DNA of 64,000 nt, from positions 71,672,001 through 71,736,000 of the forward strand of contig JBITNC010000001.1 in NCBI GenBank assembly GCA_050084985.1, given 5' to 3'. Each line of letters opens with the position of its first letter. The stretch's first letter is position 1. Positions 25,161-58,978 of the stretch are shown in pieces. Under the pieces are notes generated by a model. The model was given only the letters and a program-made list of their open reading frames with translations. It was not told the DNA's origin and ran no database searches. Made by a program: the position numbers and the translations under genes. The stretch comes from Nageia nagi. Its lineage: Eukaryota > Plantae > Pinophyta.

Positions 25161-27275
25161 TTATTGAGCTATTTAAATAGGTTGATTGATTCTATTCCTT
25201 CATCTATGAGGTGAAATTGAATTCAATGCAGTGGTGGTCAAACTATCCCAATTGATCAATCAATTAGTACTATAACTGAATAATAAGTTCATAGAGTATA
25301 GATGGTGTACCAATCTAACTAATCACTATGTAACATACTAATTTGTACTGCATCATCATATTTTGCTGATTTCTTTATTTTTAGCTTTATTTGATCTTAT
25401 GTTAAGTTTATATGGTTATTACACTTTATAGGGATGATGAAAACTATATTTAGACTATTCTAGATAGGATTGGGAGTCTATTTGTGTGTGTTTTATTGGA
25501 TCTTGATCAAATTGTACTAAGGGTTAAGCATATCTTCTCAACCACTCTAGTCTATGTTGAGCTCAATCCTTGAGCTATATATACGTGTAAGCATTTCATT
25601 TTTTCATAATAAGAATTATCTCATTATGGTATCAAAGCTTTTAGATCCATTCAGTTAGAGGATAGCTTATGGGTTCATTTATAAAAATTAAAAACTTCTT
25701 GTGAGTTATAATCCCAAAGTTTGTTGATTTATTGGAGAAGAAATGGTTACCAACAACAACACCTTGCCCATTCCTAAGTTTAATGGAGAGGAGTATGAGT
25801 ATTATTCCATTAAGATGAAGACACTCCTCATAGGTAGGGATTATGGGATATCATTAAAGAAGGATTAAGTGAGCCACAAGACTTGAATATTCTTCAAGGC
25901 AATGATAAGAATGTAAATAAAGAGGATCAAAAGAAGAACTCTTTTTCTCTCTACCATCTTTAGAAAAGCTTGGATAAGAGTATCTTTCCAATGATACCTT
26001 CTTGTGTTTGAACCAAAGATGCTTGGAAAGTACTACAAGAAATTTATCAAGGAAGCACACAAGTGAAGCAAATGAGGCTTCAAATATTGAAGGGACATTT
26101 TTAGAATATCATAATGAAAGAGGAAGAGAGTGTGGGAAACTACTATGTAAGCATTAAAACTTATGTTATGAAGATGAGAACACTTGGTGAAATCATTTCT
26201 AATGAAGTAATGATGAAAAAAGTGTTGAAATCACTACTTCCAAGATAGAATAATATAGCCATTATCATTGAAGAGAGCAAAGAATTATCTACTTAACTTT
26301 GATATGCTCATTTTTTCCTTGATGAGCTAAGGCATTGTAACACCTTAGATAATATTATTGATATTTTCATTAAGGGAGTTACCAAAGCTAAGTTTATGAA
26401 GCTGAGGACTTTGTTATTGAGTACTCTTAGCATCAAAGGGGAGAATGTTGGACTTTCAACCACTCTAAGCTTTGTATTTCTAAAACTTTGACTCTTTATT
26501 TATAATCAATAAGGACAAGTCTAGCTAATCCAACTAATCAATTGGTCATTACTACATAACAAGCCAATTGATTCATAGAATACAAATGTTATATCGATCT
26601 AACTAACTAATTTGCAACATAAATATCAGTACTACATTATTAGATTTAGCTAATTTATTCATTTTTAGCTTTGTTTGATCTTGTGTTAATTTTAAATGGT
26701 TGTTACACTTTGTAGGGATGATAACAACTATGTTTAGACTATTCTAGATAGGATTGAGAGTCTATCTAAATGTGTTTTATTAGATTTTGATCGTATTTTA
26801 ATAATGATTGAACATATCTTCTCAACTATTAATTTATGTTAAGCTCAATCCTTAAGCTATATATACTTGTAAGCATTTCATTTTTCATAATGAGAATTAT
26901 CTCACCCTTGGTTAACTAATCGATACTACATAACTGGCCAACCAATTCATAGAGTATAGATGGTATACCGATCTAACTAATTAATCTATAACATAAAAAT
27001 AAGTACTACATTGTTAAATTTAATCAATTTATTCATTTTTATCTTTGTTTGATCTTATGTTAAGTTTAGATGGTTGTTATACTTTGTAGGGATGATAACA
27101 ACTATGTTTAAATTATTCTAGATAAGATTAAGATTCTATTTAAGTGTGCTTTATTGGATTTTGATCATATTATAATGGTTGAACATATCTTCTCAACTAC
27201 TAATTTATGTTGAGCTCAATCCTTAAGCTATATATACTTGTAAGCATTTCATTTTTCATAATGAGAATTATTTCA
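25161..27275 (+). mobile_element. Internally deleted Copia: 5' LTR, PBS, gag N-terminus fused to RH tail, PPT, 3' LTR, plus a tandem partial LTR copy
   Basis: The LTR ends tctca at 25623. PBS tggtatcaaagc at 25627-25638 (tRNA-iMet type). gag PKFNGEEYEYYSIKMKTLL; RH tail IDIFIKG..KFMKLRTLL. PPT at 26435-26445; 3' LTR 26446-26904; extra copy to 27275 (period 371). The 5' start is approximate. Confidence 0.85.
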
Positions 27276-27570
27276 CCCCTCTTTTCTCCCAATCCCACCC
27301 TCCTCTCTCACCCTCTCCCACCCTCCTCCATCCCCCTTGCCCTCTCCCCCTCTCCTTTGTCCCCATCATCCTCTCCCCCCTTACATGCCCCCTCCCTCAC
27401 CCTCTCTCTTTCGTACCCCCCTTCCCTTTCCTACCACCCCTACCCCCTTTTACTCCCCCACTAACACCCTTTACCCCTCCCCTCTCCCACTACATCCCTC
27501 CCCTTGCCCACTCCACCCTCCTCCATCCCCCTCGCTCCCTCTACCACCCTTACCCCCTTTCTCTCCCCCA
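27276..27570. repeat. ~300-bp C/T-rich low-complexity tract
   Basis: Nearly pure pyrimidine with many CCCC runs, followed by (TA)n near 27599. Confidence 0.9.
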
Positions 27571-27743
27571 TTAATAGTATTAAAAATTAAAAACTTAGAT
27601 TATATATATATATATATATAATATCTTGTTATTTAACTAAGTATGTTTACATGTAAAAACTACAAAAGTGAGGTGTTCCTACTAATACTCAAATCTTCAA
27701 AACAGAATTAAGTCTTCATGTACATTTATGTATATAAAAAATC

Positions 27744-35669: not shown

Positions 35670-36377
35670 TACACTCCACCTTGCTGTTGGTAAGTGTCTT
35701 AGTGGATTTCAAGCATCATACACCAGTATACTATAGATATTTGTCTCAAACTCAGTTATTCAAATCAGCTATAAATAGCATATTGGCTGTTATGACCCTT
35801 ACGATGCTTTTAAATTTCAATACCCAAGTACTGTAAAACTTGGGACACACGGTAGTTTGAGGGTATACAAAGTTTGGACTACAAGACCTGACTCCCAGTG
35901 AAAAAATCAGGATAGTAACAATTTGCCTATGGATCTAGCCATCTATCAAGGTTTTAAACAACCGTCCACAAACAAGGATTTCTAAATATACAAAAACTTT
36001 ATGAAGATAAAACAAATAACAGACAGATGTTATGATATATGATACACAACTCCAAAGATGTCTCGAAAACACCATTTCATCCCATGTAGAGCTTTGGCCA
36101 CCAACTCCTGAGTAGAGTATTATGGCTCATATCCTACACATTGGAGGTAAAAACTGAGAAAAACTATAAAAAAATTCTTTACGCAAAATATGTATAAAAC
36201 ATCTTAAAATTTGGAAACTAATCAGAAGTGAAAGGCACTTACCACGTTCCTCCTCATAACTGCTAAGCCTCCATGGGTGCTAGTATCAGAGGTTGTCAAC
36301 GTCTTATAGAATGAATGCCCATTACTTTTTAGTTTTGGAGGAGGAGGAGGACTTGGATCACTGGAAGACACAGTTTG
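35670..36377 (-). pseudogene. ARF: Three consecutive auxin response factor (ARF) B3-domain exon fragments
   Basis: Exon 36377-36243 reads QTVSSSDPSPPPPPKLKSNGHSFYKTLTTSDTSTHGGLAVMRRNV (ARF: HSFCKTLTASDTSTHGGFSV.RRHA). Exon 36133-~36050 reads DMS..TQELVAKALHGMKWCFRDIFG with a frameshift. Remnant 35708-35670 reads NPLRHLPTARWSV. Confidence 0.9.
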
Positions 36378-37033
36378 CTACGGAAAAACGCACCCATGAA
36401 ACTCTCCAAACATTCAACATGCACACCAAAATGGCAGAACCTATATAACATGATGAATTTAAATGAAAATGCATCTATTACCTCCCTATGGCTTTGGAGC
36501 CAAAGTATTCTGTGCGTAAACCTCATTGACTCCTATTGAGACTTTAAAAGCAATAAAACATAGCTAATGTAAGGAGAATTCAACAGAAACCATGCTACGT
36601 TTTGATGTGTTCATACTGCAAAAGAAACAAAACAAAGCCCCTGCACCTTAATCCAATTAACACCTAGATGTTGAGACCCTAGAAAATAAATGAAACAAAG
36701 CCCCTGAATTTGGTGCTCCTCCATGATTTCTGATGCTGCAGGCTAAGCAGAGGACGACGCGGAGGACCAACCCATTACATTGAATCACACATGGCCCTTT
36801 TCAATTTCAAATGCCCAACGGTCAAATCCAAGGGCCCTTTACTCCTTCAATAACCGTCATGGTGTCAAAATTTCATAAAAAATTCACCTAGATCCCATAA
36901 AAATGTTTTCCCACATATGTGTTAGGATTGGTAGTAGATACCCTAGCCCAAGTTTTCTTCTATCTGGTTTAGAGTGGCAAGTGACAACATAGTGCCTTAA
37001 AAAGTGAAGGATATCATATAACATGTGAAGTTA
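36378..37033 (-). promoter_or_regulatory. Putative promoter/5' leader of the chimeric locus
   Basis: GC/CpG-rich patch at ~36735-36830 (gaggacgacgcggagg), an ATG at ~36724, and shared sequence with the inverted copy at 44825-45355. Confidence 0.45.
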
Positions 37034-40000
37034 ATTTGTCTTCTTTTTTTGTGTGTAATTTAAACTTGAGTGTGCTTTTCTAAGAAGAAAATTATGTCCA
37101 TCATGAGGTACACATAATTTGTATAACAATTCATCCTTCATGTAAAAATCATGGAAAGTTTGCAAGTTGAAAGTAGATAGATGGATGCTAGAGAATTTTG
37201 CTAAGATATTTTCTTAATTTTTCTCTTAAGATCATCCTATTTTTAGTTTCACTAATCTAAAATTAAATAATGGCATGAAGCATTATCATCTTTTATCATA
37301 ATATTTACTTCTTCAATTTATATTTTAATAGCTAATTTTACCTAGATGTATGTTTATGTATTGTGTTTTTTTTCTTAACAGAACTAATATTGCTCATTCT
37401 TTATACCAAGGAAATATCTTATTTTTTATTCATTGGTTAGTTTATATATGCATAATAAAATACCTTTTGAATAAATTATTCAAAAGTAATTTTTCTTTCT
37501 TATTATCTATATGAACTTTTCTTTTTATTTCCTTAATATCAGGTATAGGACTATCATTATTTTAAGTTCTTAAACATTTATCACCTAGCATTTTTTCTTG
37601 AAATCTATACATAATAAGACTGAACAAACATAAAATGTATTCAACAAAAGAAACAATAATGAGTAAGAATTACAATGAGTAAGTGGGTTAATATCAAAGC
37701 AAGATTGTTATTTTATAAAAGGAACCCTTAAGTGCTCATTAGATATAGTGACATAATACAATAAGATTATTAATGCATTGCAAAGCAAAAAATAATAACC
37801 TAACATACGGAAACTGTAATTTCATAATCTTATTACTTAGATTCATCATAACATCAAACAAAGTTCTTGGTTGAAATAAACTCCTAGTCCAAAATGCTTT
37901 CATTCTAACCCCCAAGTCCATAATGTTTGTGATCTAGAACCCTAGGCCAATAACGTTGATGATATAGTGTGGATATTTTCTCACTCATTGAAGTTGAACC
38001 ATGTCATTCCTAATCACTCATATGATCATCTTTTAACACCATCAACTTAAAAAAAATCAATTTAACCATCAACAACAACCAAGGTTCACCCTTTAAGAGT
38101 ATAAGTTATTTGTCAATAGGTTTATCAACCCTATACAAATCAACTAAGTTATTTTGTATATCATTTAATCAATTTCATTTATAGTAGTATTTTTCATTGT
38201 TATATCTTCAAGAAAATTCACCATTTATGTATTTACATTTTTCATATATTGATTTATTGTATTATTACAATACATCATCATATTTCTTTATGTGCATTTG
38301 TGGTGAACCTCCCTCTCTTTTTATTTCTTTACTTTTCATATCAAAATACTAGATTATCCTCGTGTTAAAGCCTTAGGTCTAACCTTAAGGTAGTATGATT
38401 TCAATCTCTAACAATCTTTATCTTCTAAATCAGATCTAAAAACTCTTTTAATAAAATGTTATAGAAAAGGAATTTCAACTTTCATTTTGATCAAACATAT
38501 AAATAATTAGAATATGCAAAATAATCAAAGTAAGGTAGTCAAGTTGTTAAAAACAATCTTTGGTACAAATATATCAAAAAATATCATGATTAAGGATATT
38601 GATAGATCAAAATAGTGCAAAAGTTATATCAATAAAAAATCAAAATGATTCATATTAGTACTTTATCGTAGGAAATTCAAACTTTATATATTCCATAAGA
38701 CTATAAAGGTTAAATTTTGAAATGTTTGAGGAGAAGAAGATTCTAAATAATAGTTGTTATTATTTGAAGATGATTGAAGCATAAAAGTTAAGAATGATAA
38801 CAACTTGCTAGCTAGGTTTTTCCCTAATATTTTGAAAGGAGAAGAAAGATCCCTTTATAGTTTTGGAGAGGTGGCTTAAGTGTTTATGAATTAATATGGA
38901 TATAATATCAAGAAATTGTCTATCCAAGTAAAAACATATACAATCCATCCTATATCCTAAGATTCAATCAGGTATAATTATAGCCCTATATTAAACAACA
39001 TCAAAGATTAGTAAATAAAAATCTTTTTTCTTTTTTTTTTGGTAAGGATAAAAATAATTAGTGGGTTTTTAGAAAACAGGGCCCCAAAACCTGTACTTAC
39101 ATAGAAACATATTCATTACAATATCATAAAAATCTTATTTATATCCTAGTCCTAAACTTCAAAAGTAATTTTGGGCGTATATTTTTATTGATGATGATGA
39201 TGAATAGTATTAGTAATATCATTCAAAGATCTTCTATTCAATCTCTTAGTTTATAGCTTAAGGAATGGTCAAAACTCCTACTTTAATATTAGATAAGCAA
39301 AAATACATATAATACTGATAAGAAAATATGAAATAAATAAAATGATAAAGTATGCTTTTGATTTTTTGCTTTATATCTGCCTCATGGACATTGATTTTAG
39401 ATCTCTGGAATCACTTTTTGTATGTTTAAGAAAGTTTCTAGTCATTTTCTAAATATTCATAATTTATTAAAAAATTTAATTGTTTTACTAGTCTCTTAAT
39501 TTTAAAAATATTTTTAGCTTTTTGGATTTGTAAATGTATTAATAAATTTATGGTTTGGTCTCAAAAAAGTTAGTAAAATCATGTATTCAAAGTAAGAAAA
39601 AAAACCACCAAGAATCACTATTATAAGGAAGCCATGGATAATAACTTCAAATGAAAGGAAGTTATGGGACATACAAGTGATTTATCATTTATGGATAACC
39701 TCTAAAATGATCATTATTTTATTATGTGGATAAATACTCAAGTTAGAGTATATAAGAGTAAAAGAAAATAAAATCAAAACTATGAAAATTGCATTCATTG
39801 TATTATGTTTGCATGTAGTATAGGTATGGGAAATGGACTCCCATGCAAGGAAGATGATCACTAAACTTAAAGAGGTATGGTTAAACCATATTTTAGTTTT
39901 GAAACTAAGGTTTTAGCTACTCTAAGAAGCAAATACTTGATTTCCCACTAGCAATCAATGATAACAAAATCCCATTGCCTCTTGATTCCTTCATAATAGA

Positions 40001-40994: not shown

Positions 40995-42190
40995 TACTTG
41001 TGCAAGAATATGGATCCACTTTATAGCCAAAAAGTGGATGCTTTTTCTTTGATTTTTAGTTTGGTCACAATTGATCTCAAAATTTGAAGCACCTAGAGAT
41101 GGAATCTTGAAAAGGTCACTTTGGTAAAACTGTAGTGCTCCAAGTTTAGTTTTTAAATATATAATTTATTCCAATACCCATATGATAAAAATTAAATTTT
41201 GATAGACATATATAAAAATCATTATTTAAAATTTATAGTTTTAGGACCATACCTTTAATTGTTGGGCCAATATATTTTGACCTAAATTGAAGTATTTTTA
41301 AAAAAATCTTTTTGGGAAATGGTAGTTAAAACATTGAAGAATGTTGAGAATATTTTTTCATAATTTTTTGATAAAAAAAAATATTAATTTTTATTGGCCC
41401 TAATTATGTTTTTTAAAAGTGCTTTTGTTGGGCCACCATAACTTGACCTAAACTTATCCTTTTTTAGAATTTTTTTTTATTTAGTAGATAATTATGTGTA
41501 TAATGTTGTCATATAATTTATTTCATAATTTTTCAAAAAAACAATTATTAAAAAATAGAACAACATACTTTTTCAAGTTTATAGATAAGTTTGATTAAAA
41601 ATTAATCAAAAAATAGAAAATGTAATCCAATTATAAAAAAAATTACATATTTGAAATCTACACTCTCATATATAATGGGTTTTAATTTCATAAAAAAAAA
41701 TCTAAAAAAAAATTATCAAATGCATGTTTGAAGTTGGATTTTTCCATTGCTATTGATAGGAACTTGCATGTGCATTTCCAAGGCTGAGGATTGGCTCACC
41801 ATGCCTCTCCCAAGCCAAAATACAAGGCAAACCCTAAGGGAAGCAAATTAAAAATTTGGAATGGGATCCTGTTATAAAATGGGATCTCGATATGAATAAC
41901 ATTCTATTATATATCGAGGTCCTATTATTTAAAGTACAACATATCCATGTTAAAAGGAATGAGATCCTATTTTGCATGAATTTGTAATTTTCAAAATGGG
42001 ATTCCATTTATAGTTTTTTCAAAACAAGATCCCATTTTGAGTTTTTCAAAATGGGATCCTATTTTCATTTTGGCTTAGGAACCTGAAATAAAATGGGATT
42101 CCAATTTTTATAACATAGGATCCTATTCTATCTAAAAACAATTCAACTTCACTCATGTCCACTTTTAGTGGACCCAACTTCTTGCATGCA
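40995..42190. mobile_element. ~1.2-kb non-autonomous TIR element, copy 1
   Basis: Imperfect TIR tgcaagaatatggatccact / agtggacccaacttcttgca and a subterminal array of gggatcctatt motifs at 41860-42130. Homologous to 54360-55578. Confidence 0.65.
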
Positions 42191-42925: not shown

Positions 42926-43949
42926 TTGAGGAAATTTATTTTCCTAACCAATTATTTGTAGGTGTATGCAAGGAAGAATAATTATTTTTAGTATCAAGAT
43001 TTCAACCCAAGAATATTGCATACAACATAAATTCCTTGATTTACATTATAAGACTATATAATTTTTCTCTACTATCCTTATTGAATAGGTGCCTCACCAC
43101 CTTCATGAAACATTAGATAGTCAAAGCTTTACCATATTTGTATGTCTTCTTGATCATAAAATGTTAGGTTACAATTATTATATAGTTGGAATATAATAAT
43201 ACCTTTGTAGTAAGTACAATAAACTTGACATGGTAATATTTAACATCAATGAGGATGTTCCCATTGATAATTAAGGAAACCTTTCGATGCACATTATCGA
43301 TATTCTTGTATTGCAATGCTTCTCAAGATTAATAACTAATTATTTATGATAAAGATTATTGAACAATATTTCTACATCCTTCCAAGGTGCAAAGATATAA
43401 TATTGGTTTGTGAGAGATATTACACGAAGAGTATTATTATGTTTTCAATTCCAATGTGTATATCCATATATATATATTGTGTGTGTGTGTGTGTTTAATA
43501 ATAAAAAATTTCTTATTATAGTTTAGGAAACTTGATTATTATTGTTAAGATTGTAAATTCTCATACATAGCTTAAATAATTGGTTATTTAAACATAATCT
43601 ATAGTATATGAAATTTTCACTTAGTTTGTAATAAAATTGTCTAATATTACGGTTGCATTGGTAGATAAAGTTAATTACATATAAATCATTAGGAAGAAAA
43701 GTCAATGTCAAGTACAAATATACAATAGATCATATGATCTTAATATACTAAACAACTAGATGTTAGACATGGATATTTAGCTTGAGTATGACCAAATTCC
43801 TAAAGCAAAGAGGTTTTTCTTTGCTAAATTTAAATTATATGGAATAATTAAATTATTTATTATCAAATACAACACTCCATCCATAAATAGTGTACATCAT
43901 CAAATTACTACCAAACAACATATAATAGAGGCATTGGATAAAACTTTAT

Positions 43950-44620
43950 ATCCCTCCAACTATTTAGAAGATTTTGAAAATCAATGGTTATATTATATAT
44001 AAAGATATAATCAAAATAATTATGATTATATCCATGAATTCATATGCTTAAGGATACTACTAACCTTCAACATCTCAAAAGAAAATATCATCTTCATGTT
44101 TAAGAGTAGGATTTTGAAGCATCTATTCCCAAAAATTATATGGAAATTAGCACACTCAGTACCATCTTCAATCATACACAACAAGAAAAAGAAAGCATAT
44201 TGCTAAAGCCTCATAATGATACAAGTTTGAATCCATATATCCTTATAAAGAGCCACATGGTTCTTCTCCTAATTTATCTCATTCTTCCTCTTCTAAATTT
44301 AAATTAAGTGTAAAGTGTTGTCAATATTGTAAGAATAAAGGCCATGCAAAATCTAAATTATATAATCTTAAGAAATAAAATATGGTGTATGTACATGATT
44401 CCAATGTGGAGACAAAGTAATACCATATAAATAGGAAGTGAGGACACTTAATATAAGGAGATGTGATAAAAAAAACTCAATTAGGTAACTTTAATGATAA
44501 ATATTTTTGAATGATATGACGGTTTATTCATAACTCACATCCACTTATTGCATAATTTCTCTTAGGATGAAAACTTGCATTTGGATATGCAGCCTTATCC
44601 ATATTCATTAGGATTAAAAA
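43950..44620 (+). pseudogene. Probable Copia gag zinc-knuckle remnant
   Basis: VKCCQYCKNKGHAKSK at ~44308-44356. The rest is highly decayed. Confidence 0.45.
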
Positions 44621-44824
44621 ATAATAGTTTCACCACTCCAATCACACACACTTGCACTATGTTATTTTCTTTTAACTCAAATTTTATGAATAAGGCCATA
44701 TGTGATATAACTAATATAGATTATTATGATTTTTTTTAGGTAAGACCTAACAATTTCATAAATAGGGTTTATTATATTATGTACTATAATACCTACATCC
44801 TACAAAAATATAATAAATATTATG

Positions 44825-45355
44825 AATTCACATATTATGTGATATCCTTAGCTTTTTAAGTCACTTTGTATTTTCTTACCACTCTAAACCAATCAATAGA
44901 AAACTTGGGCTAAGGTATCTACTAACAATCCTAACACTAGAAAAACATCTTTCTAAAACTTGTTAGTGATTTTTAAATGATAATTTGACACCATGACAAT
45001 TCTAAAAGGGGGAGTGGAGAGTTTTTGAATTTGATTGTTGGGATTTTGAAATTGAAAAGTTATCTATGTGATTCAATGTGAAGGGTTAATCCTTTCTTTT
45101 TCCTTTCCATGTTGTAGCTTACAAATACACAGTAGTTTCACTTTAGTTTTAATTTCTTTACAAGTTCATTTTTAGGGTCTCAACTTCTAGATGTAAATTG
45201 GATTTAGGTTCAAGGGATTTGCTTTATTTCTTTTGCATTATATAATTGAACACATCAAATTTTGGCATGGTTTTTATTGAAATATCCTTACATTAGCTTT
45301 GTTTTATTTCCTTTAAAAGTTAAATAGGATAAACCAATGTTTATATATATATATA
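44825..45355 (+). repeat. Inverted degenerate copy of 37033-~36515 (part 1)
   Basis: ccactctaaacca, gaaaacttgggcta.ggtatctacta.caatcctaacac, tttgacaccatgac, tgtgattcaatgt, tagggtctcaac and tccttacattagct all match the reverse complement of 36515-37033 in order. Confidence 0.9.
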
Positions 45356-48300
45356 TGTTAACACCTAAAAAGGAATTTTAATTTAATTTAAATATCATTT
45401 TAGGTATTTGAAATCATTTATTTATTAAATTAAATAAATTCTCTTATCATCATGCACTCTCATCTACCTTTATGTTTTATGATAACAAGTCAGCTCGACA
45501 TCACCATAAGCCCAATGAGGAGCCTTGGCACTAGACCTTGATAGGTGGTAATATACTTGTGTCATTATTGACCAATATTTCTTAATGCCACCTATCATAT
45601 TTGTATTTTTTTACACACTGACCTTTACATTCATGTGATACTTTCAATCCATTTATAAATAATATTTTGAGCTTCAAAGGAATGACAATGGCATTGAATG
45701 AAAGGGTAAGATATCTTGGAAAGCTAACCAAAAAACATCACTGAGATTCTAATGTTGTCATTGGATTGAGGTCATATTGGTGGCTCCATTCTTTAAGGAA
45801 GCTTCTCATTCATCTCCTTTTAGTTGAATATCACCTTCATTTATCATGATAGGTAAAGTACAAGTTTGTATCTTTAAATCCATTTTGATAGGTCAAGGTC
45901 GATGAGGTTATTTTCATCATATTCATACTTTGATTTACTATTATTTCATTATAAATTAATTAAATTGAATATTGTAAGTAGCCCTAATAATTATTATTTT
46001 AGTTATTATAGTCTACTTAGGTTGTACAATAGAATAACTTTGAAGTTATTTATTTGTTATGAAGGGCATATCCATGTCTAAAACACTTGAAATGTAATAT
46101 CATTCATATCTAAAAACCCTAGGTTTTTTAGCCTAATTAATGAAGGATAAATGATGTATTGAAAAGAAGTCAAGTTCACCAATAAAAGATCCCCCTCGAG
46201 TTAAACCTTCAGCCTATCAAGAACACCTCTTTTGTAACTTCCATAGAAGATCCGATCATGCCATAAAAGATTATTTTCATTTGAAAAATTAATATAGGAT
46301 TTGCATAATTAAGCAAAATTTAAGTTTGATCATTAGGTTTTAGATGAAGTTTACAGCAACATGAGATAAGGGCGATATAAAATGGGCCACAAAATGGACC
46401 CATATATCTATAAAATAAAAGGCTAAGGATCTTTAATCATTCATTTCCATAATTAAAGAAGTAAAAACTTGATGATGATGGGAAGAAATTGCATACTAAT
46501 ATTGTAAGTGTTTCTTAACCATAGCCACAACTACAACTACAACAACCGTTGGTTCTAAGTATGATTCTTGATTTTGATGGTATTTGGGTTGTTCCATAAA
46601 TTTTTTCTTATATTTTCCTATTTGTCTATTTATTTTTTATCATTAAATGAAAATATAAAATAAATCCTTAAAAATTACATTTTTTCAATGCTTGTATCCT
46701 AGCAATGCCACTAAATTCTAGTGATGTTACTAGGTTAATAAAATAATAAAATTCAAATGAGATAATCAAATTAGTAATTAAAATATGTATTAATTAAAAA
46801 TATTTTTTGTTAGGCAAAATTAACAAACTTAGCCATATGTTTCTCATTCAGTAACCTAGGTTTTTCAGTATTCATCTCCATTTGATCATAGAAGTTTAAT
46901 GTGTTTTTTCCTTGTCTTATAAATATTTATGAATTATATTTCTTTTGTAAAAAAGTTCTTTATCATTAACCAAGCGATGTCACTATATTCCAACAACATA
47001 ATTAGATTTTAATCTTGTTCTATGTGACTATTTATTATTTTCATGAAAATTTGTTCTCCTCTACTCATTGTTACAATAGTGTCATTCTTAGTTTTCGTAC
47101 AAATTTCATTTTAAAATCATTGAAAATTATGTTGTAAAATACTTATAAATATTTTTATTTTGTCTCTCACAAATATTTTTATGTGCTTTTCAAAGTGGTA
47201 TGTGTTTATTTCCTTTTTCATTATTTGTGTTTCTTTATATTTTATCTAATGATTATAACAAAAAGAGTAGCATGAACAATAGATTAAAATAACACACACA
47301 ACCTAAAAAATATATCGCCAAAATATGTCATATATATATATATATAATATATCATATTTGATACATATAATTCCCACCATGGGAACTCTGACCCACATAA
47401 GGGTTACAAGTGTGAGTCCTAGATCAAGACCTAGACCTACTCCTAGAAGTTGATACTACTTTCAAGGTTTGACCAAATTATAAAATTTGATTATCCTTTT
47501 CCAAAATCAATTCCTAGAGCCTCTTCATCTCCTAATGATGGATGATGTGCTAAAGGGACTACAATATCTCTATCTATCCCTATAGGGCCCCTATCTATTG
47601 TTCACATGTAGCTAGCATGTCCTATAATCTTAAAACCTATGCTTTTAGAGTTCCATTTGAACCTCTAAACTTGTTTCATGAATAAATAATTAGTTTATCA
47701 TAAATTTTTTGTAATAGGTCAACCTAGATAAACCACATTCAAAATGGATATACCTGAGATATAGGCCAAGGGTGCCGTAACTCCAGATGAAGATGGTACA
47801 AAAGGACCCATAACTCATTTAGAAGATGATAGACCATAAATATACATGGGCTCCTTCTCTTTCTTTGGCTCCTTCTCCTCCCACTCTGCCTCTTCTACCT
47901 CTCTCTCCTCTTTATCAAGATCTAATGACACATGCCTCATAGTATCCTACTAGAACCAATAATCCTAGGTGTGCTGAGGATGCGAATTTGGTACCCTAGG
48001 GGTGATGGAATTGAAGGATTTCATAAACCAAGATCACCTTGAAGCTTCTCCAACAAATCTAACATTCATCCTTCTATCAAATCAATAATCAATCACACAA
48101 AAAATAACACATCATGTGTAGTGGTTCCTCCATCTCTTGGGAGCACATCCACTTTGAACCATCATTCTATTACTTCTCACGAGATAACTCTCCTACAAAT
48201 TATTAAGAATTATTCTAAGATAATTCTTCTACAAAGCTCCTATAAGAGCATCTCTATAAGACAAGCATTACCATGCTTCATCAAGTTACATAATAAGGGG

Positions 48301-51300
48301 AATACCTCTCTATTTATAATAATAAACTCACCTCTTAACCATCCTTTTACCCAAGGGTAATGTTAAAAGTGTTTCTATATTTATTCCTCTTTCTATATTG
48401 ATTATATTAATGCTTTAAGGTGTCTAAATATACTTTAAGCATTAAGTGAATTTACATTAACAAGAAATATTATATAATATTACATTATAATTTTCAATAA
48501 GGGGCATGATCCTTAGACTCCTCCCACTCTACACTCCAATTGGATATAGAACTCCAACATGAATGGCTTGATATCTATAGTACCTAGCCATAGTTGGCCA
48601 AATCCTATGAATAGGTACATCTCATGTCATGCTAAATTGATAGAGTAACCTATCTTAATGATATAATTCCATGATACACCTATATCCCTAGATGTGATAT
48701 GGAGTTATACTCCATGAGAACTCCTCATTTGACTCATCCCAAACTAGTAAGTTAAAATAGGGATCCCATATGATATCCACCTCATCCAAAAGGTTCAACA
48801 ACCTCCAATACTATTCAACTCCCTGTGTAGCATCCATCCTTTGGGTCATCTACCACCTAGACTAATGGGGTATGTCTACCTAAATAATTGTAGGTAAATA
48901 GGTCCTCACCATACCAATATGCTCATAGGCCCATTCCTATAAGATGAATGAATGAGCAACAATCTTGTATCCCTTCCTCACAAAAATAAAGCTTTGAAGA
49001 TCTCTATACAACATAGCCAAAATGCATGATGCCCATGCATATCTCTTCTTATGTAGATATATCTCCTAGAAAATAAGAATCAACCCTATATGGAAGCATT
49101 CATGATTCTTATCACTACATAGGATAGTGTCGATAAGAACCAAAACATATAGTCATAACCATTATGTATTATTTATATCCTTTAGGGGTACATAAAATAT
49201 GTCATGAATGGGTACCACTTTCTTTTATTGATGATAATCCCACACACTTATAAGCCAATAGCAATGCTCCTCCATCTCCTCCATGGACAATGTGGCTCTC
49301 TATATCAATGTACTATTCATGGGTACCCATAAGATATGATGAATGTCAATTAGGGTGAGAGTGATCTCACCCATCGGCAAGTGAAATATCTTTATATCAT
49401 CACACCAACTCTCCATCAAGGTTATCAAGAATTACTTGTCACATGGGATGCAAGCAACAACCCTCATGTGACCAAGTTCAAATGTATCTAATTATCCCCT
49501 CTCCTCACTAGTGAGCATAAATGCAATAGCCACATCCATAGTGGGACTCCATGGCTTGCATCTCATCATATATGCATGGTATTGCACCCATTTCAAATAT
49601 AAAAACTATCAATAACTAAGTAAATAGGTAATAAATGCAATTTACAAAATTAAGTGAGGTAAAAATCTAACATTTATTGCTAAAATAAAAGAATTTAAAG
49701 TTAAATTTTAAACTTTGGAACATGTTAAAATCCATACAACCACTAATAAATGCATTTTTAGAAAATTTGAACCCAACAATGATGCTAGGATCCTAGTAGC
49801 ACCACAAGATTAAGGTGCCCATTTTTAGAAAATATTAAAAACCCATCAATTTTTCCTCTAAATTTATGGCAAAAATGAGTTCATTTTTACTCCATGCATG
49901 CAACAAACTAGCCATTTTGTTTTTACCCCTATAATTTTTATAATTTGCAAAAATTAAGAAAACTTGATCAAAAAAATTTGATCCTTAAAAAACATCCATA
50001 TACATGCTAAAAGAGAGGATTTCAAGAAATTTTTGGTACCTAATGTCCTTGGGACAAGGAATTACCAATAAGATCCCTATGGACCTAACCAAAAAGTAAT
50101 ACATTGGTCCATTCTAGTAATAGCTACAGTCTAAAAATTAGTAGCTCCTCCACTGTCCTTAAATAACTCAAACTAGCACCAAGAAAATTGAGAACCAAAT
50201 ATCAAGATTTTCAAATGCAAAAGTGAAAATGAAATATCAATATGCCTATTTATAAACTAACTTGCCCCCTTTTTTAATTATTAATTACATTAAACTTCAT
50301 TAAGTTTTCTAAATTATTAAGTTTTTTTTCATCTTCAACCCCATATGCATCCATCTCTGATCAACTCTTCATCTCCTTCAGGTCCCTTAAATTGGATGAT
50401 GTTGGTGTGATCCAGGCAACATCATTGGCTTCCAAACCTCCTTTTAAAGAATTTCCTTTATGTAAAATTCAAAAACCCTCTGCATGTAATAAAAATAAGA
50501 ATGTCAATACATAATTAGTCCAAAATTTTTAAATAAATCTCTTGGGGAAAATTGTTAAAATTTAACATGAAATGATCATTAAATTTTAAAATACCTATTT
50601 ATGTTGAATGAAACATGCAACATTTTTAGTTCATTAGTGCCACACAGAAACTCAAAGCTTTTCTTTTAATAAAACTCATGCATTATTCCAATGATGTTGT
50701 TGCATTTCTAGTGACACCGCTAGGTTATCAAGGTAAAGCATGTTCCATTTTAATGTAAAGGCTCATCATTTACAGTAAATTCATGAAAAATATGTCTCAT
50801 TCATTAGGTTATATCTCTTTTCATAATTTATACACATTAAATGGTTCTTGTTGATTCATTAAAACTATCATCTATCTTGTTAATGCATATCATGTTTTAA
50901 TAAAACATTAAATGTAATGTATTGCATATCGTAATATCTCTTATAATATGCATTGATTTTCATAAATATTGCATATAGATTAGTTTCCATTTTGTAAATA
51001 CTTATCATTGTTAATGAATACTTGTCCATGTTTTTACAATGCATCCATGTATACTTTTATATCATGTCTACTAGTTATACTATTAATAAGGTATTTATCA
51101 ATGGATGTGAATGGTACTAATGCATATCTCTACATATCATAACTTATCATACTATGGTAAAAGATGTTTGCACAAATTTTGCTTATCAAATATTTCTTAT
51201 CATACATTTCTTATCATATCTCGTTACAATGATTTGATTTGATTCTTATCATATATGATTATCATATCTTATCATATGTTAAAAGTGCTTTTCATATCAT

Positions 51301-52682
51301 ATTATTGCTCTTGTCATTGGCTTCCTTTGTAAGGGAGGGGCACTCTTATCAATTGTTTCTTTTTTAAGGAAGGGGCATTCTTATCACTTGATTCCTATAT
51401 TAGGGAGGGTCATTCTTATTAGAAATCCATGGAAACATGGTGGCTTGTGAAACCAAGTTGATGACTCTTATTATTTGACATATTTGTAAGGAAGTTCCAT
51501 TTTTAAGTATCACTTTATGACTCTATAAAGAAGTGTCATTATTATTAAAAATCCATGGCAACATGGTGGCTTGGGAATCCAAGCTGATCACATAAGTTGG
51601 CAATATATCTTCATACTCTTGGTGGGTAAGGCACCAAGGATAGGTTTGATATATTATTATTTAAATGTCTTACATATTATGATATTTAATGTCTATATTT
51701 GAGATATCTTGCATAAAACATTTCTTTTCTAAGTTCTTTTCATATTCCTTTATCTTTACCTTGGATTGCTCCTATGATGAGAGGTCCATCATGTCGCAAC
51801 CAAGATAAAAAGGAAGCATAATAATGGTGAAAAACTAGGGAATCCAAAGCTAGTACCATGAAGAATTTTTTTTTCAAGGAGTATTTTCTTACTTATCTTG
51901 TTATATTTCAAATTTATGCTTTGATTATCTTTTGTCCCAAAAGCATCAAATCATATTCAAAGTGGGGCATCTATTAACACCTAAAAAAGAATTTTAATTT
52001 AATTAAAATACCTTTGTAGGTATCTAAAATAATTTATTTGTTAAATTAAATAAATTCTCTTATCACTATGCACTTTCATCTACCTTTATGTTTTATGATA
52101 ATAGGTGAACTCGGTATCACCATAAGCCCAAGGAGGAGCCTTGGTACTAGACCTGCTATCTATAAAGGTGGAAGGGTAATGCATAAGCAATTATAACATA
52201 ATCTTAAACCCTTGATAGATGGTAATATATGTGTTTCATTATTTATGGGTCTTTCTTAATGCCACCTATAATATCTAGATTTTGTTATACATTGAGCTCT
52301 ATATTCCTATAATACTTTCAATCCATTTATGTATGATATTTTGAGCTTTAGTGGAATGATGATGACATCAAGCAAAAGGGTGAGGAATCTTGTAATTGAG
52401 CAATGTCATTGGGATCCTAGTGCTATCACTAAGTTGAGGTTGGATTTATGGCTTTGTTCTTTGGGGAAGCTTATCGCTCATCTCTTTTTAGATGAATATC
52501 ACCTTCATTCATCGTGATAGGTAAAGTATAGGTTTGTATCTTCCATAAATCTAATTTGATAAGTCAAGGTCAATTAGGTCATTGTCATCATATTCATTAC
52601 TTAGATTTACTATTATTTCTTGATAAATTGATTAAATTGAATACTATAAATAAACCTAATAATTATTATTTTGGTTATAATA
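45356..52682 (+). mobile_element. 7.3-kb non-autonomous Tat/Ogre-like LTR element (LARD-like) with PMD cargo and no detectable gag-pol
   Basis: LTRs at 45356-46010 and 51972-52682, PPT aaagtggggcatc before the right LTR, and TSD atata/ataca. The flanks rejoin as one continuous sequence. Confidence 0.85.
47700..49580 (-). pseudogene. Degenerate PMD gene
   Basis: 49420-49320 reads LMESWCDDIKIFHLPMGEITLTLIDIHHILWVP. Boundaries approximate. Confidence 0.8.
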
Positions 52683-52687
52683 ATACA

Positions 52688-52917
52688 TAATAATTTATCC
52701 CCAAAGCTAAAGGTAGGTAATAGATCCATTTTTATTTAAAAGGATCATGTTTGGTGTAGATGTTGAATGTTGGAGGATTTTAATGAGTGGGTTTTTTGCA
52801 AGAAAATGAATATTCTTATGATCCAATCCCTCCCCCTCCTCCACCTCTAAAAAATAGAATAGGCATTCATCCTATGAGACTTTGGCAACCTCTAATACTA
52901 TCACCCATGGAGGCTTA
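52688..52917 (+). pseudogene. ARF: Inverted copy part 2: intron end plus ARF B3 exon
   Basis: ccaaagc..aggtaatagat.catttt.atttaaa..gatccaa.ccctcc, then RHSSYETLATSNTITHGGL (52861-52917), homologous to 36515-36264. Confidence 0.88.
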
Positions 52918-53572
52918 TCACCAACTATTTTCTTCACCTTAAGTGTAGTTGATTTGTATTGGTACAATCTTTATGCATTAATGCCAGGAACTCCACTAAG
53001 TGATCATAAGAAGCATAAAAATGGTAAAAATAAAATATTATTGATTATCCAAATATTATAGCTTATTACATGCACTTCAAAATACCATATTTCAAAAGGA
53101 GGTGTTAAAAAAAGAAATGAAAGTAAAAGAGTTTTGGTGTAGATATGAATGGTAATATTCACTAGCCTCTCCACATGTGCAAGGTTTTATATGGCTAGAG
53201 GGAGCTTTAAACATGGATAATATAGATTGGATAAATGAAAATGGAGTAAAAAATTCACAAATATATTTTGATAAAATTGTGCATACATGGAATCCTCAAG
53301 GGGGATCCACATCAATGGAATATATAGGTAAGAATAAATCATCTAAGTATTTAGATATAGATTTATACAAGAATTATATAATAAACATAAATATCCAAGT
53401 CACTATGATATGTGTATTGTAGGTATTTCAAAATTTCTATCAACACCCATATTTGAGAAATACACAATAACTAGCACAATTGATGCAAATCTAGATTACG
53501 AAGAGATTCCTAATTGTGTAGAGTGTCACACAATATTTAGAGAGGGTCCTTGCCTAGAAAAGAAAAGAGGAA
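52918..53572 (+). mobile_element. Helitron-superfamily Rep (HUH) domain remnant, Helentron/Helitron2-like
   Basis: Motif 1 SPTIFFTLSVVDLYW. Motif 2 FWCRYEW*YSLASPHVQGFIWLEGA (53132-53206). Motif 3-like DYEEIPNCVECHT..GPCLEKK (53494-53570). A putative GT-AG intron at 53328-53422 joins motifs 2 and 3 in frame. Confidence 0.8.
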
Positions 53573-53767
53573 ATATGGTTTATATGTAAGTACTTATAAC
53601 TATTTGAATTAATTAAAAATATGGTTAGTTATCAAAATTGAGCTCTGTTATGCTAAATAGATAATTATATAAAACTTAAGTTTTTACACACTTAAAATAA
53701 AATATATATATATATAGTAATTTAAATCTTTATATTTATATATATCCATTATTCCTAAACTACTTTT

Positions 53768-56700
53768 TGATGTGATACAAGTATGTAATAGAAGCTTTAT
53801 TTTTTATGCCGATGTAGAAATATTCTAAGAATCGGGTGGCTAGTTGGTTGAAGAAAAACATGGAATACTATAGTAGGTTGATATACCAATTAAGCACTTG
53901 ACCAGCTAAGAAAAGTGGGAATGTGCATAACATAAGGGCATAATCATGAGTAATGAGATGGTATGCATATCGAAATGCTCTTATATGGTTTTAATGATCT
54001 TCTTTCCCTTTGAATAATTTAAATTTAAGTATCTCCCAATGATGAGGTAATAATGAATAGGAATAGAGAAGTGAATGGGTTCATTGCATATTTTCTCATA
54101 TGATGGCATGGGGTGATGACCTAAACTTTATGTCTCAAGATTTTTAATTTTTTTTGAGTGTTTGCATAATTTCATTATGAGGATCTAGTTGAGGTATTTG
54201 CACTAGTTGATTTGATGAAGAGGCTATGTAGGTAGTAATTTATATGGGAATAGTGGAAATATAGATTTTGGTGGATGGAATGTATTGGAACTGTGGTTTA
54301 GAGATAATTATCTACAATTGCAATATGGAATGTATAGTTAATTATTATATATTATATGCAAGTCAATGCAAGAATTTGGGTCCATTTTATGGCCAAAAAG
54401 TGGAAGTGTTTTTCTTGATTTTTAGGTTTGATCATGGTTGATCTCAATTCTCAAAATTTGAAGGACTTAGACATGGAATCTTGAAAAAGTTCATTAAGGT
54501 AAAAAAAATGTAGTGCTTTGAGTATAGGTTTTAAATATGTAATATATTCCAATACCCAGATGATAGAAATTAAATTTTAATAGGCATGTATAAAAATCAT
54601 AATTTAAAAAATATTATTTTGGGACCATACCATGCACATGTACGACTCACATAAGTTGACCTAAATTAAAGTATTTTTTAAAATCCTTTTGGGCAAAGTT
54701 ACCTAATACATTGAAGATATTTTTTATTATTTTTTGATAAATATTTTTTATTTATTAAATTTTAAGTGGTCCTAATTTTGTTTTTGAAAATTGCTCATGT
54801 ACGATACACATAATTTTACTTAAACTTGTCATATTTTCAAAAAACTATTTTGTGGAGAATTATTTGTAGATTATTCTTATATAATATTTTTTCAAAATTA
54901 TTTAAAAATAAAAAGTTATTAAAAAATAAGAAACCTTGATTTCTCAAGTTTATAGACCAATTTCATTTAAGATTAATTGAAAAATTGAAAACATAATCTA
55001 ATTGTAAAAAATAAAATTATATATTTAAAATTTACACTCTCTCATTTGTAATAGGTTTTAATATCATGAAATATTTTTGAAAAAATCTCCATAAAATATA
55101 TGTCTAAAGTCAATATTTTCTATTGACATTACCATGATCATGTATTTTTAGATCCAAGGCTAAGGGTTAGCTCACCATGCCTTTCCCTAGCCTAAATTTG
55201 AGCCAAAATACATTTAAATTTTAAAAGATAGGATCCTATTATGTAATACGATCCTATTTATTAAATATTAATGGGAACATGATTGAGAAAAAAATAATCA
55301 TGTTGTCGTTCCCCTCCCATTCTTTTTCCTATTCATGTTTAATAATCAGATCCTTTTATTTAAAATATGGGATCTTGTTCCTATTCATATTTCCATTCTC
55401 ATTCCCACTCTCATTCTTGTTCTCATTACCATTTAATAATAGGATCCTATTTTTGTATCAGGATCCTAAAGTAAAATAGGATCTCATTTTTTAAGTAATG
55501 TGATCTCGTTTACTAAGAAATTTTTTTAGGTACCAAAACTCCTAGCTTTTGTAGATTGAACAACTTCTTGAACTTACCCATGCTTGTGTTTGAACATGAT
55601 TTTATGTAAAGTGAAGGACATCCACAACTTTAGAAGGATGATGGGATTAGGAGTGCTAACCAATGCTTGACTTGGAATCCCAATAGTAAGTGGCCTTAAA
55701 GGTATTTGAGATTATTATACCCATGTTTAGATGGAGGAGATAGGATAAAGAGAAATAAGAGGTGGGAAAATGATGCTCACATTTGAACCAACAATGAAGG
55801 ATGGAATGAATAAAGGAATAACTTAAGTGGTTATAGGTGATGATAATGGGAATCCTAAACAAGTTATGAAATGATTTAATAGTTATGATTTCAGAATGGA
55901 ATATGTTGAAGCCATTTGTTCCAATTATGTTATATAATGAATAGGTAATTGTTATGTACTATATGCTTGATGTGATATAATTCTATAATAGAAGCTTTCT
56001 TTATGATGTTGATGGAGAAATGTTCTAGGAATAGGGTGGCTAGGTGGTAAATATGGAATACTATGGTAGGTTATTTTACCATTCAAGTGCTTTTCCAACT
56101 AAGGAAAATGGGAATGTACATTAGATAAGGACATCATCATGATTAATGAGATGGGATGCATATTAGAATGCTCTTAGATAGTTTTGGAGATATTATTTCC
56201 CTATAAATTTTTCAAATATAGGCATCTCCCATTAATGGGGTGATAATGAATGGGAATGGATTAAATGATTTCATTATAGATATGCTCACATGATAGCTTT
56301 GGATAATGGCCTTGAATTTTTACCTCAAGATTTTTTTTTTTTTTTCATGGATATTTTATAGCATTCCATATTGAAAAGCTAGTTTAGGTATTTGAAATAG
56401 CTTATTGGATGAGGAGGCTATGCAAGTAGTAGTTTGTATGGGAATCATGGAAGCATAGATGTTGGTGGATGGAATATATTGGAACTACAATTGAGAGATA
56501 ATAGTTTGCAATTACCATATGGAAGGGATAGGTAAATATTATGTACTATATACTTGTGTTTTGAAAGGATTTTTTATGAAGTGAAGGATATTCAAAACAT
56601 GAGGAGGAATGATGGTATTAGGAGTGTCCATCAATGCTTGACTTAACATCCCAATGGTAAGTGTAACTTAAGGTATTTGATATGATTGCACCCAAGTTTG

Positions 56701-56890
56701 GATGCAGGAGATAGGTTGAAGAGTAATTGGAGGTGGGAAAGTTATGCTCACATTTAAACCAAAAATGGAGGATCGAATGGATGAGGGAATAATTTGAGTG
56801 GTTGTAGGTGAGGATTTTAGGAACCCTAAAGAAGCTATGAAAGGATTTGATAGTTATGATTTCATAATGAAAGAATTGGAAGCCATTTAT
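53768..56890 (-). repeat. ~0.95-kb tandem duplication containing a Gypsy gag start; the first unit is split by a TIR element
   Basis: 53768-54360 plus 55580-55920 aligns with 55968-56890. The minus strand near 56050-56160 reads HDDVLI*CTFPFSLVGKALEW*NNLP. Confidence 0.75.
54360..55578. mobile_element. ~1.2-kb non-autonomous TIR element, copy 2
   Basis: Collinear with 40995-42190 (gccaaaaagtgga, tggaatcttgaaaa, ttccaataccca, gctcaccatgcct). The empty site is visible in the duplicate unit at ~56550. Confidence 0.75.
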
Positions 56891-58978
56891 TGTAGAGAGA
56901 TTTTAGATGTACTAGAAGGAATAAAGAGGACAATTAAGACTTATGTGAGGGAATATGGTATTAATTTCTTCATAAGAGGATTTTCAATGGTGGAACTAGA
57001 GATTATACTAGTAAATAAAAGATTTCATATGATAGGGATGGGTATGGTTATATATTTCAATTAATGCTGCAAGGATTTAGGATTTGTAACTAGGACTTCA
57101 TCAAAAGCATTTTCCCCTAGAATATAGGGATCTACATCTTATATATAGATAATATCATAAGGGGTAGTGGTTGAAATAATTGTTATGGAAATGCTAGTTG
57201 AAGGGTTATACATGACTAGAATAGATTTAGGAGACTCTTTTAGTTTTCTTCAATGCTTGGTTTTTGGTGTTTCACCATCAATTCTTCTTTGAATGGGAAA
57301 AATATATGTTGTGTGATTGGGTTTGTTTTTGTTACTTGTAATGAATACATGATCTTTTTTTCCTTTTGAAACATAAAGTTATAAAATGAAAAGGATAATG
57401 TGCAATGTAGCAACAATTCATATAAGTGATAATCAAATAGTCTTATATGATATTTGACATAGTTATATATATTTATTTTCCTAAAAGTGAATCTAGTCAA
57501 ATATTTTAATAAGGTAGGTTGATGATCTATAGGTTAGTTTTATCATACTTTCATCAACATCCTCATTTATGCAACTTTCAATAGCGTAGTGATTGACTAT
57601 TGTATTTGGAGCTTCATCATAACCACACACAATCACCCATGATCCAAAGGAGGGTAACGATTCACTTAGGGCTAACCAACCCAAGTGATAAATGAAAATT
57701 GAAGGTTGATGTCTTCTTATAGATATCTTAGGCTTAGAAAGATCAATCTATACCTAATATACTCTAAGTATGTGTGCCCAAATTCATCAAGTGAGCAATT
57801 CACATGCTTAGGTATTGAGGCCTACCCCCTCATTTTATCACATTAGAGTAAATAGTTTGAGGACTTAGCCAATTTAAAACCTCACTTACCTTTATATATT
57901 CATCCAAAATAACAATTTTTCCCACGTTAATTGCATTTATATATGGAGCACATTAAAAGAAGAAGATAATATGGATGAACATACAACTATATGAATGTAA
58001 TATTACAATCCCACCCAAGCTAATCTAGATCTAATGTAAGGGGAAAAAACTAATAACAGAAATAAAAGAAATAAATTAATCCCATATTGATCATTAGAAA
58101 TGTAAGAATAATAAATATACTACTTTAGAACATGAAATATGTAAGAATATATATTATAAATAATAGAAATTGAGCTTAAGTTTCCATGGATTATATGTAT
58201 GATCATGTTGTTGATGTGGAGTCCTTAGTTTTCATGTAAGATTTATCTTTCGATAACCTATAACATAATGTAAGGAAATAAATATAACTTTAAATGCACT
58301 TACATGATTTAGGGAGTTGCTTAAGCTACTAAAGGAGAAAGCCTTCCTTAGTAGGCAATCAACCCCCTAAACCAACTCAAAGTATTAATAAAAAGGATTG
58401 ATAACAAGCATGTAAATGATAAAAATGATTTGCATTTATGATACCTAATAATAATAAATGATGATGAGCATTTATGTAGATTATAATGATGGAAACAAGA
58501 ATGAACCATGGATACATGAATCTTAGTGATGAGCTTAAAAGAAAATGAACAACATAACAATAACAAGATGATGAAATGATAACATAGGTAAAGAGAGCAA
58601 TTCTTTGGGCATCCCCTCCATAAGCAAAAATAATTTAGGCAAGATCAAGGATGCATGATTTTGGAATGAAGAATGCACCCTCGATGATGAGCTACCATGA
58701 GAAAATGAAATGAACAAATCATGAATGAGCTTGAAAGATCATAAGATGCCTTTGGAGATGTTAAATGATATATAGCAATGTTGTGTGTTGAAATGACTCA
58801 AAGAAAATTCTATTTATAGGTGAAGAGAAACATGCTCTGCCCTTCAATATGATGGTAAAATGGTCAGTTAAGATTGATATTTGAACTTGGTACTTACAAA
58901 TTGATACAAATCATTGATCAAATCATGAAACTAATGGTTTGGATTAAAGTAATGCACTCAAGCATGGATCAAGAAAAA

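Follow-up and report, generated by a model that had tools for sequence, protein, structure and literature searches.

Helitron-like elements have been divided into HLE1, the canonical Helitrons, and HLE2, which comprises Helitron2 plus Helentron (HELIANO, NAR 2024; PMC11417382). The DUF6570 domain is specific to HLE2 and has been proposed as its marker, and of eight classes of land plants that were sampled, six proved to hold HLE2 elements, against an earlier view that they were absent from land plants (PMC11417382). The RepHel proteins of land-plant HLE2 carry Rep motifs of the types PTIFFTLSxxDxxW and YEWQHRGSPHxHG (PMC11417382). Capture of gene fragments has been described for maize Helitrons, for the Culex element Helentron-Cq-32A, which holds histone fragments, and for a Phytophthora proto-Helentron (PMC4067079). 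In the published Helitron and Helentron captures, the captured gene fragment derives from DNA and retains an intron, is decayed and frameshifted, and directly adjoins sequence of the element; a diverged copy resembling the parental gene is also present, and the cargo sits between intact element ends in several copies (8 and 25 in the Helentron cases) (PMC4067079). The premise of a first-pass annotation of the present locus, namely that gene capture is mainly a trait of canonical Helitrons, is therefore dated, Helentron capture having been described in 2014 (PMC4067079).

The locus reported here lies in a window of 64 kb (the whole stretch of DNA that was analysed), which is AT-rich (31% G+C) and full of decayed repeats. 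At 52917/52918, sequence derived from an auxin response factor (ARF) gene and ending in ..TLATSNTITHGGL abuts Rep motif 1 SPTIFFTLSVVDLYW, with no filler. The locus is probably inert genomic debris, in which a dead ARF fragment and a dead HLE2 Rep scrap were brought together by a chance non-homologous join. Its features are the following:

36261..37052, minus strand: ARF copy A, a paralogue in inverted orientation, whose exon runs past the breakpoint (..THGGLAVMRRNVV, then GTAAGT)
44802..45329, plus strand: ARF copy B part 1, which precedes the B3 exon and looks like intron sequence, 73% identical to 37052-36531(-)
45356..46010, plus strand: left LTR-like direct repeat, which aligns with 51972-52684 and begins TGTTAACACC (TG)
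51972..52684, plus strand: right LTR-like direct repeat, with the purine tract AAAGTGGGG just upstream at 51959-51967
52685..52917, plus strand: ARF copy B part 2, the intron end and the 5' part of the B3-start exon
52915..52920, plus strand: breakpoint, ARF ..GGAGGCTTA joined to Rep TCACCAACTATTTTC.., with an ambiguity of at most 2 nt (CA)
52918..53019, plus strand: Rep block 1, motif 1 SPTIFFTLSVVDLYWYNLYALMPGTP, frame 1, profile positions 444-483
53034..53152, plus strand: Rep blocks 2-3, with two frameshifts, profile positions 490-529, found by tblastn
53156..53305, plus strand: Rep block 4, HUH region, frame 2, profile positions 534-580 (E 5.6e-9)
53470..53574, plus strand: Rep block 5, His/Cys block LDYEEIPNCVECHTIFREGPCLEKKRG, frame 1, profile positions 595-629

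The breakpoint was placed by aligning copies A and B side by side, together with Rep homologues reading ..HQIG[SC]PTIFFTLS. Near it, copy B is identical to copy A at 38 of 44 positions up to GGAGGCTTA (GGCTTA), after which the two diverge completely; a reading of TLATSNTITHGGL as native Rep sequence was rejected on this ground. In the Rep homologues, the native sequence is ..LRGTRAYW.KC..EL.DMIHQIG[CS], followed by PTIFFTLSAAD.., and since nothing resembling LRGTRAYW precedes the SPTIFF of the window, the Rep sequence begins at 52918. The homologues have ..SNMIHQIG[CS]P.. at the position of TLATSNTITHGGL and tblastn alignments extend into it; some of them creep upstream of the breakpoint because the ARF-derived SNTITHGG mildly resembles SNMIHQIG. 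This resemblance (52891-52917) falls exactly at the breakpoint; it looks accidental at the protein level, and it could be a trace of microhomology used in joining.

Around the join, four stretches of open frame can be read: (i) NRHSSYETLATSNTITHGGLSPTIFFTLSVVDLYWYNLYALMPGTPLSD.. in frame 1 (52858-53058), (ii) ..TIFQKEVLKKEMKVKEFWCRYEW in frame 2 (53045-53152), followed by a TAA at 53153-53155, (iii) YSLASPHVQGFIWLEGALNMDNIDW..YFDKIVHTWNP in frame 2 (53156-53419) and (iv) LDYEEIPNCVECHTIFREGPCLEKKRG in frame 1 (53470-53574). The first-pass annotation had described an ARF exon running directly into Rep motif 1 within one frame. The direct join is borne out, as the frames that it quoted are present and both halves are far beyond chance; the single frame holds across the join, but the ARF exon upstream of HSSYETL lies in another frame. 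Indeed, copy B has a 2-nt insertion relative to copy A, which throws the exon's upstream stretch (..DPIPPPPPPLKNR) out of that frame. Continuity of the frame across the join is probably a coincidence, because the ARF part is frameshifted and keeps only ~16 B3 residues; an in-frame join has a prior of one in three, and both partners are broken.

On the Rep side, a family profile of 1467 positions was built from 28 full-length members, and the searches were made with separate, unjoined pieces. The window matches the family proteins and the profile only at 52897-53574, in five collinear pieces that lie in three frames and span positions 444-629 of 1467; they make up 0.66 kb or ~13% of RepHel. An 88-aa Rep piece gave 33 hits by phmmer against 1.84 billion representative proteins (best 2.8e-10) and no candidate in a word-indexed search of 5.8 billion proteins, and the Cryptomeria protein P0044 matched the window by tblastn with a summed E of 1e-34. 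In brief, (i) block 1 is 61-69% identical to P0040-P0046 by tblastn and 66% identical to P0159; (ii) blocks 2-3 read NIIDYPNIIAYYMHFK in frame 3 and TIFQKEVL..FWCRYEW in frame 2, and the TAA at 53153-53155 replaces the conserved Q of YEWQHRGS; (iii) block 4 has a degenerate HUH motif (SPHVQGFIWL), with H-V-Q at 53174-53182 against H-V/I-H in the homologues, and runs on to ..FDKIVHTWNP; (iv) block 5 has tblastn matches with P0012, P0041, P0045 and P0046. The damage thus includes at least three frameshifts, an in-frame stop, a one-codon insertion and the change of HVH to HVQ.

Rep homology stops at 53574, upstream of the catalytic Tyr motif (YISKYASK in P0045; Y..KY..K in P0045 and P0044). The block that had been called motif-3-like is present, but it is the His/Cys block situated between the HUH and Tyr motifs, and the Tyr motif itself is missing. 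No match to profile positions beyond 629 occurs anywhere in the 64 kb, and neither DUF6570, the N-terminal Rep half, the Tyr motif nor a PIF1-type helicase was found in the window by profile and tblastn searches. A search for Helitron_like_N, which the same annotation had proposed, gave a divided answer: the window's own Rep pieces had no Pfam hit of any kind, being below detection, whereas their homologues carry this domain (PF14214). Compared with the RepHel of land-plant HLE2 (PMC11417382), the window copy shares the Rep motif type and differs in being an internal 0.66-kb pseudogene with a spoiled HUH motif, from which DUF6570, the Tyr motif and the helicase are missing and in which no termini were recognised.

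In the phmmer search, the named relatives of the Rep piece come from Ginkgo biloba (gene models) and Cryptomeria japonica, and they carry Helitron_like_N and, where long enough, DUF6570. A search with the Ginkgo protein P0012 returned the combination of DUF6570, Helitron_like_N and PIF1 in Cryptomeria and Ginkgo, followed by fungal and animal proteins of the same architecture, some of them with Herpes_teg_N or OTU domains. Because the closest full-length relatives, from Ginkgo and Cryptomeria (P0002, P0012, P0035, P0040-P0047), carry DUF6570, the fragment is supported as belonging to the non-canonical HLE2 lineage, an assignment that depends on the marker in its homologues; the earlier proposal of a Helitron2/Helentron-type Rep agrees with it. 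Among the Pfam accessions listed for the relatives of P0012, we recognised none that we take to be an AP-endonuclease (Exo_endo_phos) domain and, since these relatives would then be devoid of the endonuclease, the lineage may be nearer to Helitron2 than to Helentron proper. The full-length family profile matches Helraiser (a bat Helitron, HLE1; 7lcc) collinearly over Helraiser 522-1467 (E 5.6e-38), whereas the Rep-only family profile does not detect it at E<=1; this agrees with a Rep remote from those of canonical Helitrons. Among the Ginkgo HLE2 gene models, two (P0047 and P0051) jump from ..LFPTGEAEWLQPR to NMIHQIGCPTIFFTLS, omitting ~100 residues that other members have; this is either an internal deletion or a prediction artefact.

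On the other side of the breakpoint, the ARF identity is carried by copy A. Its exon (36225-36377, minus strand) matches the DNA-binding domains of Marchantia ARF2 (6sdg, E 2.5e-9) and Arabidopsis ARF1 (4ldv, E 1.6e-7), and SSDPSPPPPPKLKSNGHSFYKTLTTSDTSTHGGLAVMRRN aligns with ARF residues ~108-150. Copy B alone, which in comparison is frameshifted and retains ~16 B3 residues, gave no significant ARF match, and it is therefore assigned to ARF through its DNA homology to copy A. In the self-comparison of the window, 52685-52920(+) is 73% identical to 36513-36261(-) (E 1e-38); when the nested element at 45356-52684 is removed from copy B, 821 nt align with 37052-36261(-) (E 4e-111). At the level of homology, the left side is established as ARF-derived. 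An ESM Atlas look-up of this side returned B3/ARF clusters and the EcoRII N-terminal domain, which is taken as a lead only, and the window's own pieces gave no B3 hit with Pfam.

The exon of copy B part 2 reads ..DPIPPPPPPLKNR, then a frameshift, then HSSYETLATSNTITHGGL, and its B3 domain is incomplete, ending after ..THGGL, about 16 residues in. Past the Rep scrap, the downstream sequence was searched for what is missing of this exon or of the ARF gene, and nothing was detected. In copy B part 1, the left edge of homology lies at ~44825. The stretch at 44825-45355, which had been called a leader, in fact belongs to this ARF fragment as its upstream half, and was separated from the remainder by the nested LTR-like insertion.

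This insertion is a 7.3-kb element (45356-52684) that splits ARF copy B and is bounded by LTR-like direct repeats of 0.65-0.71 kb, 82% identical to each other (K2P 0.208). No gag or pol was recognisable inside it. Its LTR-like repeat belongs to a very high-copy family in air-metagenome contigs, and the loose ends of these contigs pile up at 51974 and 52684. The insertion may have produced a 5-bp target duplication (ATATA/ACATA). Copies A and B of the ARF fragment differ by a K2P of 0.318 and, given 0.208 for the repeats, the ARF fragment is older than the nested insertion. With a conifer rate of 2.2e-9 per site per year, these values correspond to ~70 My for copies A and B and ~50 My for the LTR-like repeats.

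Other repeats in the window were also recorded. Frames at 476-1528 resemble, by eye only, the C-terminus of a Copia-type integrase (..KTPYELWFSKK..) and a reverse transcriptase. Three copies of a ~350-bp repeat, 82-88% identical, occur at 25272-27278 and 27337-27621, and beside them is a proline-rich open frame of 94 codons (PSPPLLCPHHPLPPYMPPPSPS..). A gag-like reading of 43781-44375 was discarded, having no Pfam support.

The first-pass annotation had concluded that a rolling-circle element acquired the ARF exon and that this copy preserves the junction between donor and element. For such a capture, a double-strand break in a Rep gene of HLE2 would have been repaired with ARF sequence as filler, or by template switching, giving a non-autonomous ARF-carrying element of which the locus would be a decayed and further-truncated copy that still shows the junction. 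Several features agree with this: the ARF fragment came from DNA, since it retains intron sequence, and its ends are arbitrary, both of which are seen in captures by Helitrons; ARF and Rep meet without filler; and Helentrons and HLE2 are documented to capture gene fragments (PMC4067079; PMC11417382). The locus also resembles the published captures in having a diverged parental-like copy, copy A (71-74% identity). However, a capture should show the ends of the element on either side of its cargo and recur in several copies with the junction in common, and neither was found here in the data searched. What there is of Rep is internal and truncated on both sides; helicase and DUF6570 are absent, no termini were recognised and only 13% of RepHel is left, and the junction falls within the Rep catalytic domain, a position equally expected from random deletion. 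Acquisition by an HLE2 element is consequently considered unlikely, and the claim of a preserved donor-element junction is not upheld.

An HLE2 element would be expected to end in short terminal inverted repeats with a 3' hairpin and to show T-T insertion (or TT..CTAG, of the proto-Helentron type). Comparison of 43000-44840 with 53570-57200 for inverted termini gave only AT-rich matches of 11-15 nt, none of them convincing. Several dispersed copies of the junction would have supported capture, but the window, the protein search, the JGI metagenomes and the air-metagenome contigs listed yielded no second one. Indeed, the 67-aa junction peptide, compared with 5.8 billion proteins, matched only P0159 and P0160, both of which are Rep-only fragments. 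The exact junction 20-mer had one match in the JGI metagenomes (L001), which was rejected as a chance match since only those 20 nt are common; L001 also has an unrelated 23-nt match (91%) elsewhere in the window.

Sequencing runs with near-identical DNA were found only among air metagenomes (X1-X3; 52478-53577, 92-99% identity), and this DNA is presumably wind-borne gymnosperm pollen. Over 51000-56000, the depth of the contigs reaches thousands at the LTR-like repeat and at the repeat at 54340-54840, and is ~0.6-2 in the junction bin. Contigs at 92-96% identity cover 52478-52852 and, from 53026 onward, several Rep stretches. The contigs over 52478-52852, one of them at 94% identity, run from the LTR-like repeat into the ARF part, so that they probably come from the same locus in a related plant.

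These contigs also bear on the chance that the ARF-Rep join was made by misassembly. No independent contig among the air-metagenome matches listed bridges 52917/52918, as would be expected of an assembly chimera. On the other hand, the join has neither an N nor a repeat, both flanks are low-copy, and the contigs at 92-96% identity come near it on both sides (52478-52852; 53026 onward). A misassembly is thus highly improbable.

The stretch at 52685-54339, within which the breakpoint lies, consists of short low-copy pieces that have no relation to one another. Such a mosaic would suit an origin in which both fragments were passengers of another carrier, for example a Pack-type DNA transposon or the interior of a non-autonomous LTR retrotransposon. 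The sole candidate outer repeats, an LTR pair formed by 41001-41821 and 54367-55197 around the mosaic, were nevertheless rejected, because the right copy is a solo insertion in a tandem unit whose other copy (55967-56891) lacks it. Moreover, no Pfam-recognisable gag, pol or transposase lies beside the mosaic and no convincing terminal inverted repeats were found, so that transport by another carrier is judged quite improbable. As to the tandem unit itself, its ~0.93 kb consist of X (53767-54357) and Y (55580-55920), and it occurs again at 55967-56891 (76-81% identity). A 1.2-kb insertion (54358-55579) interrupts the first tandem copy, and its initial 830 bp belong to a high-copy repeat also present at 41001-41821.

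The reading that we favour remains that of inert debris, for which the truncations, the frameshifts, the lack of a downstream ARF remainder, the low depth at the junction and the old divergences are counted. As to the manner of joining, we infer the following sequence of events. An old ARF duplicate of 0.8 kb (an intron and the first part of the B3-start exon), which ends abruptly in mid-exon, would have become attached, through non-homologous end joining, to 0.66 kb from the interior of a RepHel gene of HLE2 type (DUF6570 family). This join may have arisen through deletion of everything between two unrelated neighbours, or through double-strand-break repair that stitched the ARF and Rep fragments together. 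The 7.3-kb element with LTR-like direct repeats would later have inserted into the intron part of the ARF fragment, after which everything decayed. The shared frame would then be a coincidence, with no protein made and no mobility conferred. Against debris it can be said that both fragments are short with abrupt ends, a pattern that would equally fit fragment capture by a mobile element, that the second ARF fragment in the same window hints at fragment shuffling in the region, and that a handful of old dispersed copies of the same junction could exist in the host genome, which the searches did not cover.

The junction might be the relic of a filler-DNA-type capture of ARF sequence into an HLE2 Rep gene, with other old copies elsewhere in the genome, which we regard as rather doubtful. 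If it were true, no earlier breakpoint between a host exon and a non-canonical Helitron would have been preserved in a seed plant, and HLE2, a group recognised in land plants only in 2024, would gain a case of gene-fragment shuffling among seed plants. The locus has no functional consequence, since both partners are dead. As it stands, it mainly confirms that HLE2 elements of the DUF6570 type once lived in this gymnosperm lineage, and that pieces of genes and transposons become stitched together and build up in its genome.
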